64,000 bases of DNA from Trichoplax adhaerens (Eukaryota; Animalia; Placozoa). Below are positions 24,910-32,600 of the stretch, piece after piece; the first letter of the stretch is position 1, and each line of letters opens with the position of its first letter. Position numbers and translations under genes: made by a program. A model generated the notes under the pieces. That model saw only the letters and a program-made list of their open reading frames with translations, searched no databases and was not told where the DNA came from. The stretch is from NCBI RefSeq assembly GCF_000150275.1, contig NW_002060949.1:4284449-4348448 (forward strand). Direction: 5' to 3'.

Positions 24910-27900
24910 TTATTCCTTAACCAGATGCGAGTCTGCTCCCACTATGCATAACCTATTGATCTGCTGTAAGAAATGATTGTCCGATTTTCTCTCGAAGTGA
25001 AAAGGCATCGGTAGAATACCATTCAAACGATTCCTATAACAGTATTTGTAATTTTATACAGTTAGATTCGGAAAGTAGTGGCTTTAGATATTTATTACTC
25101 TAAATCCTCAACTTACCAAACTTTTTCTTCTATAACATAGTAAGCCAAGGGCTTTTGAAAGCCATTAAAGTTTGAAGCTGCAGCTGCTGTATACGCACCC
25201 ATATCTAGAGATATAATATACGTAATTAAATATTGGAAAGTTTGAAAGTAGAATTAAAAGTTGTGATAGTAGATAAATTTACTAACCTTCGAAGTACATC
25301 CAGTCTCCAACATCCAACTATTCAAATACGTGAAGTTTTTAGTTAACGTTTGATATAAATATGCGTTACGTAAGATAGGTTACTAAGTAAAGTAAGTAAA
25401 CATACCTCAGGAAGCATGCATTCCTTCATGACACAATCTAGTCCGTCACAAGTTGGTCCCCATATACTACTAGAATACTGCTGCTCGTTATCTCTTCCCA
25501 AAGTTTTAGGGTATACAATCGCATGATCGTACAGCAGACAATTGAAAGAACCATATACACCATCGTTTACATAGTACATGTATTTCTGCTGTAACGATAA
25601 CAGCCGCGATTAGCCACTGAACATATAAGCAAAAATTCTTAAACGGTTAAAATGACGCCTAAATACGAACCGTGAGGGCTTTTTTCACGTTTTTGTTGTC
25701 AACATTCCTATCTGTTACGAAAAAGCGTATGAGTTACGTTGGGTTTGCATAAGAGTTAGCGTACATGCATGCTGTTTACCTTGCGCTTGCGTATTGTCAT
25801 CGTTAACTTGGCGCTTAGCAATAACATTCACAGCTAAGTTAAAGGCAGATGCCACGTAATAGCGACCTTGATGCAAATAAAAGAGTAAATTTAGCATATA
25901 CTGTATTTCATATTCTAACAAAATTAATGCTATAAATTCTGCAATATGAAAAACAGCAAATTACATAATAATACCTGGCTCAGCGATGATCCTGACTCCG
26001 CTTTCAACCGGAAAATGTTTGTTTAATGCCTTATTTAGAGTTGCACTAATCTACATATACCCATAAATAAAGCACCCTTATTTAGACGCTAAATAGCGTT
26101 AACTTAAGTAGTCTATAACCATGACACCACATATATCATACAAGAATTCGCTTTCACACACACGTACCTCTTCAAAACTAACTGTTGCCCGTGGTGAGCC
26201 CGGAAATCCTCCACCAATGTCCAAAATATCGAATTGAAAGCCCATAGATTTCTGTATAACAATTGAAATGTATTACATCTTGTACTTCATCACGTAACTC
26301 ATTAAGCCACAAATCGGGACATTTTTACTATTTGCTTTATCGATTTTTGCACTCACTCCATAGTCAAATGCCGTTTTCGCAATTTCAACCGCAGATGAAA
26401 ATGCCGAAGCATCGTAGCAGCCACTGCCTACATGAAAGCTGATAAATATAGTAACTATACGTGAGTATTATATTACTTTACGAACAATAGAGTAAACAAG
26501 CATATATTGCACAGTAAATAACTGCGTTACACGGGCTCAGGATTTTAATCTTTCTTAATCATCTTCATCACTAGTATGTGATTACAGTGAGGGCAAGTTT
26601 ATATCTTCATAGCTCGCAATGTTAACAGAATCTCAATCGCTTGCTTACCTTATGCCAACAACATTTAGGTCAAGGTTTCGTGCTACTTGCAAAAGGTTTG
26701 GAACAGTTTTAAGAGGAGCACCATACTTCTGTCCCAGCTTCCGATTAAAATCATATCACATCGAACAATTTTAGAATGAAGAAGTCATCAAGGTTATTTT
26801 GAGTTAATTCTATACTCACTCGGCAAAGCGATTTGGAATCATCAGTGAGCAATCGTAAGATTAATCTAATAGTAAAATGAAAGTTACATTTAACACTTGT
26901 TCAAGTCATGCTAAATAAATATATGAAATCAACATTATATGCTTACTTGGCCGTAGGATGGAGTTGCTTCACTTTATGCAGTTCAGGTTCATTGTCAAAT
27001 GTCATCATACTTACTTCGCGCTTGGCAGCAAATCTTTTAATAAATTACATAACAAAATGAAGTTTTATGACTTCTGTACTACGGATAAGACAAGATTTAC
27101 GTATCATAGGCATGCAAGATAATTACGATAATTACTCACTTCAAGTGAGAAGCCTGTTTGCACGGATTAGCGTATACGATTTTGCTTGGAGGAACACCCA
27201 ATTTCAGAACTGCCTTAATTTCAGCCTGATAAGGAATTCACAAGGCATCATATATATATCAATATTTTTTATCAATTTTGTTAAGCAGCAAACATAATTT
27301 TTTAGACTTTGAAGTACAGAAAAAGTAAGAAAGATTAACTGAAACAATTATCTACGAAACTAACCATGCTTGCACAATCAAAACCAATTCCCAATGCACT
27401 CAGCGTGGCTAAAACGTTGCGGTCGTCATTGCATTTTACAGCTAATATAATGTTATAAAAGATCTAAATATTTGTATGGTATGATATTCAGCACCATAAA
27501 AAATCGAGAAACTTACCATAGAATGGCTCTACTCGTGGTAGGAGGGATAACCACTGTTTACGTGAAAGGAAATTAATACGTATTAATTACAAGTTGTTTT
27601 TTTGCATATAATGTATTGGCTACCTGCCGTCAAGTCATCAATTTTAAACCATTAGGAGTACAATGTATAATGAAGATACTAAAATTTCGTATATGTATAT
27701 AGTACGGCTGTCTTTAGTCACTATGATGTGGGTAGAACGCCGTATACTGTATGGCATATGTTCCATTTTTTGGTTCTAACCGCAGTACAGTATCGTACAG
27801 GAACTAGTCAGTGTATTCTACTCACTCGTATTCAGGAATTTTTAAATATTTACAATTCACATTCGCTAAGCACATTCACTGATTGTCCTGTATACGAGTA

Positions 27901-28537
27901 TTGCACTTATCAGATATCAGAAGTACTGTATACACGTGTTAACATCAGAAGCACCAATGTCCGTTGTACTTTTCATTTATAAAATACATACAGCTAAAGC
28001 ATATAACAAAAAGTTTACTGTCAAGATTACAAATACACAATACAGTGGTAGGAAAGAGCGTAAAAATTGAAACGAAAAGACTGCTTATAACTAATAAGTC
28101 AACCAATACTGTATTCAATATCCACGTAAACTATAGAACTTATACGTTGTATACTTTTAAAACTGAGCTATAGCAGCCGTATGGATATTTTAACGAATTT
28201 TTAGAACGTATGCTAACTGTACAAGAATTTATCATAGTGAAAATCTGGACTTACAGTTTTGTGCTTCTTTAGAATGTTACCAACATTCACAATGTAAAAC
28301 GGATCGTCTTTATCCTTTGAAAGTTGATAGTAAATAGTAGGATTAGACATTTACAGTAAGATGTCACCACAATCTCTAGTGTGCATATTCTTAAAACAGA
28401 ATTACAGTGCTGTAAATGCTAAATACACGCGTTCGTACACTTACATCGCGACCAGCAGCATTGGCTTTAATTGTTACTAATTCGCGAAGAGAAAGTGATG
28501 GTAAAACTTCCAAAACAGTGTCGTAAGCAGGTTTCAT
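24910..28537 (-). CDS. ODC1: Ornithine decarboxylase (catalytically intact, not an antizyme inhibitor)
   Basis: Starts MKPAYDTV at 28537. Retains the PLP lysine in PFYAVKCND, plus [44 protein letters not shown] and the catalytic Cys in WGPTCDGLD. Stop TAA at 24912-24910. Confidence 0.96.
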
Positions 28538-28754
28538 CCTTTCGGATAGAGTTTTATGCGGGTTCAGAAATTACTAATTACTTATACTAAGTTATTCCTA
28601 TAATACTAGTAAGATAACGTCGTCTGTATAGCGGGCTGGCGGGCCTACAGAAATTCAATGAAATTCAAGTTGGTCATAGGATTTTGAATCACGAACTTAT
28701 ATAAATAGCAAGATTTTACCGCGAGAGGTTGCACTTTGAAAATTTGAGCAAATA

Positions 28755-28984
28755 TCAGCTAGGGTCCCACTCAGGTTCGAAGTTGATATCCAACTGATCC
28801 CGAAACAAGCAGGGAAGATCCACCGTGACACAACAATCTCTTCCCTACCAAATGCAACGATATCCGATGTTAAAATTCAACTAACCGGTTTCATATTACA
28901 ATTATCGAAGATTTAATACTGTTAAAAACCTACCTGCCGGTGAGAAACCCTCTCAATCTTCACGAAAGCTTTAAAACGAAGAAT
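28755..28984 (-). CDS. AUU-initiated regulatory upstream ORF (uCC-type) of ODC; 2 exons (28984-28934, 28844-28755), 46 codons
   Basis: The gcaaaaATTc start is followed by ILRFKAFVKIERVSHRQ, a phase-0 89-nt gtaggt...ttggtag intron, then GRDCCVTVDLPCLFRDQLDINFEPEWDPS-TGA. The C-terminus matches the EPPWxPS* signature of ODC/AZIN1 uCCs. Confidence 0.88.
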
Positions 28985-29109: not shown

Positions 29110-29645
29110 ACCGTACAGTACAGTACAGTACAGTCGTTAACGGATAGTGTATACTGTATACTGTACTGTACAGTACTGATAGTGCGTATTACACTGGTTA
29201 GACCTGAAAGAAAGGTTCGGTTATACAGTACAGTACCTGTACTGTACACTACAGTATACTGTACTGTACTGTACACTGTGTACTGTACAGTACAGTACTG
29301 TAATAATGAGTAAGTTAAGTCAGAACTCTATAGTACTGTAGGTATTTTCTTACCCCTATGGGTTGAACCGCTGAGTACAGTACAGTACATACAGTACAGT
29401 ACTATACACTGTAGACTAATGAGTGATACGGTACATACTGTACTGTACTACTGTACAATGCACTCTTTCGTTATCAAGCTGTGACATCATTTTTCAAATT
29501 TAGAAAGTGTACTGTACTATACTGTACAGAACAATATGCGCGGGAATCAGGCCTGCAAGGCCTGCGAGTCCGTACTGTACTGTATAACAGTTTAACAGTA
29601 TGTACTGTATCTAGGTACAGTATACTGTACAGTGTACAGTATACC
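29110..29645. repeat. TACAGTA/TACTGTA array upstream of ODC
   Basis: One of the densest arrays in the window, abutting the putative ODC Inr. Confidence 0.85.
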
Positions 29646-32600
29646 TTAACCTTAATGTTACTTCATTGAGAAAAGGTGATTCAATTCAAAATCGACCGTC
29701 TACCTATTAAAGTAAGTGCATAATGAAGTGTTTGGCACAGTAAGGTATTTTGACGAGATGAGGCCGAAAAGGTCTGTCCGTCCAACAGTGAATAGTGCGG
29801 GACTGCAGGTCTTCTTCTATCATATTGCACGAAACCAAGCTAGCAGCCAATAGCAGGCTAATATGCGATACAGTTGAAATGACTAGCAAAATAATCAGCC
29901 AAAACATTATTAGCATAGTAACAGATCGCAGATCGTTTCCTGTCTCGTCTCTGTCTAGTTAAAGAAATAAAATTACTCAAGACTGCAAAAGAAAGGAACA
30001 AAAATATCAAGAGCCAATTACCCAAGGTTGTACCGATCTGTCTGGGTAGAATTTGAGCCAACTTTAAAGATATAACTTAAGGCATCATAATAGCTGAGCA
30101 TCTTTCAACCATTTTTAGAGGGCTCGCCTAGCCTCTGCAATACTAATCCTATACTGTACGGTACTGTACAATCAGGTCTACTGTACTGTACTGTACACAG
30201 TGTACAGTACGATACTATCTGCAATTGATATTCAAAGTAGCTGGTGTTATGTGTTCGTATTACTGCTTGAGTCAAGTAATAAACTTCGTATGATGTGTAC
30301 ATGATGAGAAGATAAGGAAAAGTTTATTAGGACAACTGTAATATAACAAGATACGGTAGATTTACAGTACTGTACTGTACAGTGTACAGTATAGTTAATA
30401 TACTGTACAGTACAGTAAATCTACAAGCGTAAATCAGTGTACTGCACTGCATGTAATCGCTGTAATTATAACTCGGGTAAATGGACAAGGATTATAGAGA
30501 TAAAGAAAGGATCTTTATTAGAGAAGCAGATATACCTTAACTAGTAAAGATCAGCTTCAGCATGGAGCCAACGTAGAGACGCAGCAACTGCGTCAGTTAC
30601 ATCTAACAGCCATATATGTATAGTGCAGTACAGTAAGCGTACAATCGCGTGATATATATCGTGGTACGCTACTGAGTTAGATAAGAATCATTGAACGAGC
30701 ATGTAATAAGGGTACTACATACAGTGGGTCATACGACAATCGCAAGGTAAGAATGTACATATAGTACAGAATGGAAGTAGCATGTAAGAGAAGGATGAAC
30801 GTAAAATTATATCAGTCTTAAATTAATTAATGAACAACTTTGAAGAACTAAAAAACTCCGCACTACAAAAAAAATTATTCAATTAATAACAAATATCCGT
30901 TTAAATGGTAACAAATGAAGCATGTTTATCCATGAGTTGCACGCGTGAAATTACATTTTAGGCGAACATAAAAGGCGTGCAATTGCGTAACAACAAGCGT
31001 GATAGTATACAGTATATATATGTAATAGATGCTTAACACATACTAACAATTCTGAATATATAATAGTTATTTATCAAACTAACATAGTGTATGTAATAGC
31101 TGGAAGGTTGATTTTGTGCAATATTTCTCTTAGAAATCCCTAGTATGGTATACGATTTCATTGGATACCGTCACGGACTACTAGAAGAAGACCTGGTTGT
31201 CTATAGTACCGTATAGTGGAACGACCGGGAAAATGATAGACCTCTCACTTTATTTTGCACTTATTATGGTATAGTCATTCACTAAATTAACATTATTTTA
31301 TGTTCGATGAGTTTTAGCATGGTTTTGATTTTAGACGTGGATTAACTATGGACCACCAGAAAAATATTCTTCTAGTGGTCTATACATTAATATTATGCGA
31401 TGGACTGCTGTAGAGTGACACTTTTATCAGTTATATTATGTATGTTAGAACTAAAGAGGGACAGTGACTTCTATCTAGTGTTACAATAAAGGTTATTGCA
31501 GGACTCTACCAGGGAATTCTGAAACAAATACAGTATTTATCTCTGACTGTACACTGTACAGTTAAGGCATAGCATGCAAACTATCACCGGCGAAGGTTCG
31601 ACTAATACAAAACATTAATTAGTAATTACTGTGCGAGCATATAATGGCTACTAAAACCCGTGGAAATTTTACGGGGTTTTAATTAATTAATATTATATTT
31701 ATCATAAACTGCATTATTTATGACCCTATTTACAGTATCCCTGTCTAGTCTAGCATGGTCCCATATTAATTAATTTTAATTTGATTTTAATGTGTATCTT
31801 GGCCGATTAGAAGTATTGTTCGAATCTTAAATTTTTTTTAGTTCAGAGACGATTCATAAGTTTCATTTATTTTGTTCTAACTAAAAATCTAGATTTTAAT
31901 AGGTATAATGCAGATCTTAAAGTTGAAAGTCATATCATTCGAGGCAGTATTTCTCACTGTATGGAATGATGTACAGTACTGTAAATAAGAATAGGAATCT
32001 CGTAAGGTTTAAGCATTATTTCGGGATTTGCCCATAACTTTTGTTGATTTATTGGTAGACTATGTATGATTTAATTTAAAAGTTCGTATCCAGTCTCTTC
32101 CAAACGGCTATACATTATCAGTAGGTCTAAAGACGTAGAATATTAACAAGTACTATGCGCGTACGTTTACCAGAGTGTATTGGCATAGTACAATGTTGGC
32201 ATCAGTAATTCCGTGTGTGTTTTGACTCATGGATATAACCTCGTATTTATGTGGTAGTAGTAGATGAGTACAAATATATACTCGTATATAGGGTAATTGC
32301 TATTCATTTGCACTTAGCGAAGTTTTACGTGCATATATAAGTATCAATCGGTGATATGAACAGGAAGAGTATTTCGGTATACTGTATGTAAAGTACAGTA
32401 GAGTACAGTGTGTGTGTCACTATGCATGCAGATAATTAAATTTGAATTTAAAATCTTGAATGACTTCTGAAACCTGTTATTACAAATACTATTAACGAAT
32501 TTCATTTCAGCAGTCGGCGATTCGTACGAGTAAAGTAGTCCGTGGAAATACAGTACTTAAATTGTGTTCTAGAATTGCCGCATGAAATAGAGTTCATATG

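Follow-up and report, generated by a model that had tools for sequence, protein, structure and literature searches.

The ODC leader of Trichoplax adhaerens, on the - strand of the 64,000-nucleotide stretch of DNA analysed here (the window), contains a 46-codon upstream reading frame that has no AUG and is split by a predicted intron into 17 and 29 codons. From its sequence, this frame is a well-supported member of the metazoan family of upstream conserved coding regions (uCCs) of ODC and AZIN1. It shares with that family its location in an ODC leader, an AUG-less frame with an ATT, a length of about 50 codons, a Pro-Ser-stop end, peptide homology and gene structure; the one family feature that it lacks is a pair of adjacent prolines before Trp. 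Since all the family features tested are present except Pro-Pro, and since undoubted members also lack Pro-Pro, we place the Trichoplax element in the family, as had been claimed from the sequence alone; homology, both intron positions, and the spacing and context of the ATT agree on this. We consider it quite probable that the frame is a placozoan orthologue of the uCC of animal ODC and AZIN1, is started at an AUU (28984) and gives negative feedback on polyamine synthesis. The class is already described, and the Trichoplax member is new as an annotated feature of the genome. A literature search for Trichoplax ODC, uORF or antizyme, which did not take in the species aligned by Ivanov et al. 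(2008, 2018), returned nothing relevant.

ODC homologues from animals and from three groups of fungi have been described with uCCs in their leaders; most of these uCCs begin at a non-AUG codon, usually AUU (PMC2811004). Prolines are found close to the C-terminus, Pro-Ser is the last residue pair of the animal forms in six phyla, and Pro-Pro was described as present in "almost all" of them (PMC2811004). The vertebrate uCC has about 50 codons, and repression of mouse AZIN1 by spermidine depends on the AUU together with the final ten codons (PMC4458265). When polyamine is high and eIF5A function is impaired, a pause at PPW queues ribosomes back to the AUU and thereby raises initiation there (PMC11058473, PMC9082881). 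This queuing work on the AZIN1 uCC is that of Ivanov et al. (2008, 2018), as related in PMC2811004, PMC4458265, PMC11058473 and PMC9082881. Polyamine-dependent repression that depends on the AUU, the last ten codons and eIF5A has been demonstrated for mouse and human AZIN1 only (PMC2811004, PMC11058473, PMC9082881, PMC4458265).

The first part of the Trichoplax uCC (28934-28984, - strand) consists of the ATT (28984-28982, context gcaaaa-ATT-c) and 16 further codons, the last being the CAG before the donor. It would be joined to the second part across a predicted 89-nt phase-0 intron (28845-28933; GTAGGT...TTTGGTAG). The second part (28755-28844), which is single-copy in the genome, has 29 codons (28844-28758) ending E-P-E-W-D-P-S, followed by TGA (28757-28755). 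The nucleotide motif TATTTGCT (28747-28754) abuts this stop codon and is kept across phyla in our alignments. From the stop, 35 nt of leader exon 2 (28720-28754) lead to the donor of a predicted second leader intron of 75 nt (28645-28719; GTAAAA...TCTGTAG), and leader exon 3 (28538-28644), 107 nt in which a sequence scan finds no ATG, runs up to the ODC start codon at 28537 on the same - strand. The uCC stop is thus 218 genomic nt or 142 spliced nt from the ODC ATG. The stretch upstream of that ATG would be transcribed as a leader, for which we predict three exons. An earlier reading, made from the sequence alone, had proposed the ATT at 28984 opening 17 codons, the GT-AG intron 28933-28845 joining them to 29 more, the PEW-DPS-stop terminus, and the second intron 28719-28645 followed by the ODC ATG; each of these we reproduced, for the introns as coordinates and sequence signals.

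The acceptor TAG of intron 1 is a stop codon in frame with uCC exon 2, so the long uORF needs spliced RNA. We also considered a uORF made of exon 2 alone on unspliced RNA and rejected it, since the same TAG closes that frame and the conserved intron favours splicing. The layout was compared in six genomes: Patiria miniata, Branchiostoma lanceolatum, Saccoglossus kowalevskii, Mizuhopecten yessoensis, Oculina patagonica and Nematostella vectensis. All six have an AG acceptor at the homologous point before uCC exon 2, where the first residue after the acceptor is Gly, or Ser in Nematostella, and all six have a GTAAG donor after the uCC stop. The distance from stop to donor is 35 nt in Trichoplax and in the three deuterostomes (Patiria, Branchiostoma, Saccoglossus), as against 33 nt for Mizuhopecten, 37 for Oculina and 39 for Nematostella. 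In coral both leader introns are real, because transcript L028 maps on the Oculina genome sequence (L022) in three leader blocks: exon 1 ends at about 7176, exon 2 starts at about 7290 after an intron of about 115 nt, and the exon with the ODC ATG begins at about 9989, after the second leader intron. Coral intron 1 divides the uCC at the same point as the intron predicted in Trichoplax. The position of intron 1 in Trichoplax, where splicing is predicted, therefore has strong indirect support: the six genomes conserve it, and a transcript confirms the intron in coral only. In Trichoplax itself, both splicing and the TSS are inferred. We suggest that the shared gene structure, a phase-0 intron within the uCC and a leader intron about 35 nt past its stop, is itself a family feature, derived here. 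The protein collections searched yielded no transcript-derived Trichoplax ODC protein.

The end of the uCC and the absence of ATG from its leader are both unusual for this DNA. Across all six frames of the 64-kb window, the only W-x-P-S-stop is the one that ends the uCC. When the window was simulated with a first-order Markov model, 0.15 occurrences were obtained per 64 kb on both strands, so that about 5e-4 would be expected per leader-sized stretch. On the - strand from 29389 down to 28538 there are just two ATGs, at 28894 and 28677, and each lies within a predicted intron (intron 1 and intron 2, respectively). The predicted leader exons below 29100 (399 nt) hold none, against 7.5 expected from the ATG density of the window (Poisson P ~5e-4), and the exon junctions CAG/GGA and GCG/GCC create none. 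An AUG-free spliced leader, claimed previously, is thus borne out in every frame of the predicted exons.

The homologues of the peptide were found by way of the downstream gene: one ODC exon led to animal ODC proteins, two more protein searches named them, and the contigs encoding them were then scanned. The Trichoplax exons were searched and aligned singly, not as a joined ORF or protein. Every leader that reached far enough held a related upstream frame, and the exon-2 peptide of Trichoplax aligns with ODC leader peptides from five other phyla. These peptides end L-E-P-E-W-D-P-S-stop in Patiria (L032), F-E-P-P-W-D-P-S-stop in Branchiostoma (L033), F-E-A-P-W-N-P-S-stop in Saccoglossus (L025) and A-E-P-P-W-D-P-S-stop in Mizuhopecten (L024). 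Among transcripts, the end is P-P-W-E-P-S-stop in a mollusc (L026) and P-P-W-D-P-C-stop in L031, and a bivalve-like transcript contig (L020) contributes its last four codons only, W-D-P-S-stop. The anthozoan ends are D-S-D-P-S-stop in Oculina (L022) and in coral transcripts L028-L030, A-S-D-P-S-stop in transcript L021, and D-S-E-P-S-stop in Nematostella (L023), whose locus has an N gap and whose uCC was found with a widened end pattern (EPS-stop). A BLASTP comparison of the Trichoplax exon-2 peptide with that of Saccoglossus gives 12 identical residues in 18 (E 2e-9), and over the whole length of the exon the identity is 48-52% with Patiria, Branchiostoma and Saccoglossus. Thirteen of the last 15 residues are the same in the starfish Patiria, including an identical EPEWDPS-stop, and the C-terminal half of the Trichoplax peptide groups with the bilaterian, not the anthozoan, sequences. 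The whole uCC has 46 codons, compared with 48-50 in transcripts L021, L026, L028 and L031. In the codon alignment, third positions change freely wherever the amino acid is conserved. Two corals differ at nine uCC codons, eight of them synonymously and one non-synonymously, which indicates that the constraint acts on the peptide. Conservation in relatives, cnidarians among them, had been set as a check on the sequence-only reading, and homologues are present in starfish, amphioxus, acorn worm, molluscs and anthozoans. The sole placozoan match in the protein searches was the annotated Trichoplax protein P0190, the next relatives being at most 63% identical.

The gene downstream of the leader is a multi-exon ODC, identified by exon-wise homology and by relatives with Pfam annotation. 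Its AVKCN, GGGFPG and WGPTCDGLD motifs, which belong to the catalytic site, are intact, in agreement with the earlier description of a catalytically intact enzyme. The true first coding exon (28445-28537, - strand) has 31 codons from ATG 28537, ends at the donor GTAAGT and encodes a peptide resembling the N-termini of two mollusc ODCs (P0003 and P0042). The remaining exons, which carry the three motifs, lie by homology within 25113-28314, with approximate ends; the alignment with a mollusc ODC took five well-placed pieces. The public model TRIADDRAFT_27475 (P0190, 391 aa) begins at ATG 28350, within the first coding intron, and contains neither the first coding exon 28537-28445 nor any of the leader. 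Standard annotation does, as predicted, miss the uORF. At the other end of the gene, the annotated stop TAA after the final Trp codon (25110-25118, - strand) overlaps a near-consensus donor, TG/GTAAGT, and Trichoplax ODC ends earlier than most animal ODCs; on these two grounds a further C-terminal exon may have been missed.

A search of the genome (105.6 Mb, 1414 contigs) with an ODC exon gave about 14 ODC-like copies of that exon, 34-51% identical, several of them in tandem arrays about 7 kb apart. They lie on contigs C1397 (~944-965 kb and 1131-1138 kb), C1373 (~14-25 kb), C1362 (~3-10 kb) and C1414 (7.30 Mb and 12.97 Mb). The uCC exon is present once, and it belongs to the ODC copy with the greatest similarity to the ODC of other animals. 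Ten 10-kb regions fetched around the ODC-like paralogues contained no W-x-PS-stop or PPW frame. A profile search of the genome for antizyme (PF02100) gave no match, with the controls equally silent. As to the neighbourhood, a C2H2 zinc-finger gene lies upstream of ODC, head-to-head in Patiria (L032 1-2542) and Branchiostoma (L033 1082-6365) and on the same strand in the coral Oculina (L022 539-4606). In Trichoplax, degenerate TACTG/ACAGT pentamer arrays (29222-29408 and 30383-30424) are found directly upstream of the ODC leader, before the divergent neighbour; they have no ATG on the ODC strand and could be a promoter spacer or a common placozoan simple repeat.

The C-terminus of the uCC is where Trichoplax departs from the PPW form. 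As the sequence-only reading had noted, PEW stands in place of PPW, so there is no Pro-Pro step before Trp. PEW is no special mark of an early-branching animal, as Patiria has the identical EPEWDPS-stop. Pro-Pro is likewise absent from Patiria (PEW), Saccoglossus (APW) and all four anthozoans, the last also without Trp. Because clear family members do without it, we treat Pro-Pro as frequent rather than defining. The columns kept in nearly all of the 11-12 leaders compared are instead [D/E/N]-P-S-stop, an AGC codon and the post-stop YRTTTGCT. Serine before the stop is encoded by AGC in 11 of 12 leaders, though six Ser codons exist. In 8 of the 12, spanning placozoan to chordate, the stop is immediately followed by YRTTTGCT (in 9 if L021, with one extra T, is counted), for example at 8755-8762 in L032, 9271-9278 in L033, 9653-9660 in L025, 7394-7401 in L022 and 8251-8258 in L023. 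Nucleotide conservation of this kind suggests that the mRNA itself is constrained where termination occurs, besides the constraint on the peptide. We found no mention of conserved nucleotides after the uCC stop in the literature searched.

By analogy with AZIN1, the Trichoplax uCC most likely acts on ODC as the AZIN1 uCC acts on its own gene. At low polyamine, most scanning ribosomes would pass the weak AUU and translate ODC. At high polyamine, those few ribosomes that translate the uCC would be delayed at the conserved C-terminus or at the stop codon, with scanning ribosomes lining up behind them as far back as the AUU, where initiation would rise. Fewer ribosomes would then reach the ODC AUG, giving negative feedback on polyamine synthesis. 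Both polyamine dependence and eIF5A dependence are carried over to Trichoplax by the same analogy and should be read as presumptive. What speaks against an AZIN1-like model is that Trichoplax lacks Pro-Pro, the step to which mapping in AZIN1 assigned the eIF5A-dependent pause. Either a single Pro, the Trp or the Asp-Pro context may be sufficient, or the decisive pause may occur at Pro-Ser-stop.

The same conserved uCC could be initiated elsewhere than at ATT 28984, which we regard as unlikely. A second in-frame ATT (28955-28957, context gtgaagATTg), which would give 37 codons, has A at -3 and G at +4, a stronger Kozak context than that of ATT 28984 with its C at +4, and in the coral transcript L028, too, a further in-frame ATT precedes the junction, by 9 codons. 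If the TSS lay inside or after intron 1, ACG 28826 or GTG 28823 in exon 2, each with a purine at -3 and G at +4, would apply and give about 23 codons. The exon-1 peptides are poorly conserved in the alignment, a point that leaves room for such starts and for which reason the assignment of the start leans on spacing and context. Both of these favour ATT 28984, which is the first near-cognate codon past an in-frame TAG (29053-29051). Four transcripts reach far enough 5' for comparison. The distance from ATT to junction is 17 codons in Trichoplax (context AAA-ATT-C) and also 17 in the two anthozoan transcripts, L028 from coral and L021 (both ACC-ATT); it is 16 in the mollusc transcript L026 (AAA-ATT) and 15 in L031 (AAA-ATT-C), so that the AAA-ATT context of 28984 recurs in these last two. 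The transcripts of the other species moreover extend 57-103 nt 5' of their ATT, which also counts against a start elsewhere. Of the two ATTs we favour 28984 by a fair margin, and in Trichoplax initiation would probably use this AUU.

Two further explanations concern what the element does. It could act mainly at termination, and not by a PPW elongation pause: a pause caused by the acidic-Pro-Ser-stop terminus together with the fixed AGC and the nucleotides kept after the stop would differ in mechanism from AZIN1 and produce a like output, polyamine-dependent repression of ODC. The near-universal columns listed above are just these, while Pro-Pro, and in anthozoans Trp, are missing from several leaders, Trichoplax included. 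eIF5A also stimulates termination, and tripeptides containing Asp-Pro are among the eIF5A-dependent pause motifs known from ribosome profiling, both of which count for this explanation. Against it, transcript L031 combines its PPWDPC-stop end with no post-stop motif, and in the single case tested the pause was assigned to PPW (PMC11058473, PMC9082881). On balance we hold this explanation to be quite improbable for Trichoplax. Less probable still, and in our judgement very improbable, is a chance ORF or decaying relic that has no regulatory role in Trichoplax. Its one favourable circumstance is that a single placozoan sequence was compared. The chance expectation of ~5e-4, the homology at E 2e-9, the intact frame, the splice signals at both conserved positions and the AUG-free leader all oppose it, and a chance ORF was rejected on these grounds. 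The reading that we prefer is the AUU-initiated orthologue of the animal uCC.

Several consequences would follow from placing the Trichoplax uCC in the family. The Trichoplax ODC gene model is corrected by the addition of the first coding exon and the three-exon leader. On the sequence comparison, the AUU-initiated leader peptide, with both leader introns, would predate the divergence of Placozoa, Cnidaria and Bilateria. The presence of the uCC on a motif-intact ODC in these animals fits the idea that vertebrate AZIN1 inherited its uCC from an ODC ancestor. The natural series of PPW, APW, PEW and no-Trp ends is a ready mutant set with which Pro-Pro could be set against Pro-Ser-stop and the nucleotide context. 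We tentatively raise a bolder possibility, which we think doubtful at present: the animal ODC uCC may have as its ancestral core, and as its one nearly universal part, a termination module consisting of acidic-Pro-Ser(AGC)-stop and YRTTTGCT. The acorn worm (APW), the starfish and Trichoplax (both PEW) and the anthozoans (neither Pro-Pro nor Trp) would in that case sense polyamines by slow eIF5A-assisted termination within a conserved stretch of mRNA; PPW would then be a reinforcement in some bilaterians, and the element and both its introns would predate the placozoan/cnidarian/bilaterian split. The Trichoplax uCC represents no new kind of regulation.

Compared with the AZIN1 uCC as it has been described in publications, the Trichoplax uCC likewise lies in the leader of an ODC homologue, has no in-frame AUG and has an AUU near the 5' end with A at -3. 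Its 46 codons correspond to about 50 in AZIN1, its C-terminus is Trp-x-Pro-Ser-stop, and its AUU is about 40 codons before the presumed pause site. It differs in preceding a catalytically intact ODC and not an inactive paralogue, in having P-E-W instead of P-P-W, and at the +4 position of the AUU, which is C and not G in Trichoplax. There is resemblance also to the ODC uCCs of other invertebrates (Patiria, Branchiostoma, Saccoglossus, Mizuhopecten and the mollusc transcripts), which share the exon layout, with the acceptor before Gly and the donor 33-35 nt past the stop, as well as the post-stop TATTTGCT. Relative to these, the exon-2 peptide of Trichoplax is about 4-5 residues shorter (29 codons vs 32-33), its second residue is Arg and not Gly, and the spliced distance from stop to ODC AUG is 142 nt vs 77-78 nt in the mollusc transcripts.

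The anthozoan ODC uCCs (Oculina, Nematostella and two Logan transcripts) have the same two-exon layout as Trichoplax, with 17 codons from ATT to junction, and share with it the [D/E]-P-S-stop end, the AGC Ser codon and the post-stop TTTGCT. Unlike Trichoplax, they have no Trp; they end S-D-P-S or S-E-P-S, without Pro-Pro, and their start context is ACC-ATT. More distant parallels, to which no sequence homology is expected, are the ODC uCCs of fungi (Pezizomycotina, Basidiomycota and Zygomycota) and the small uORF of plant AdoMetDC, which ends Pro-Ser. These are likewise non-AUG or conserved-peptide elements in leaders of the polyamine pathway, with Pro close to the C-terminus, and they are regarded as having independent origins (PMC2811004).
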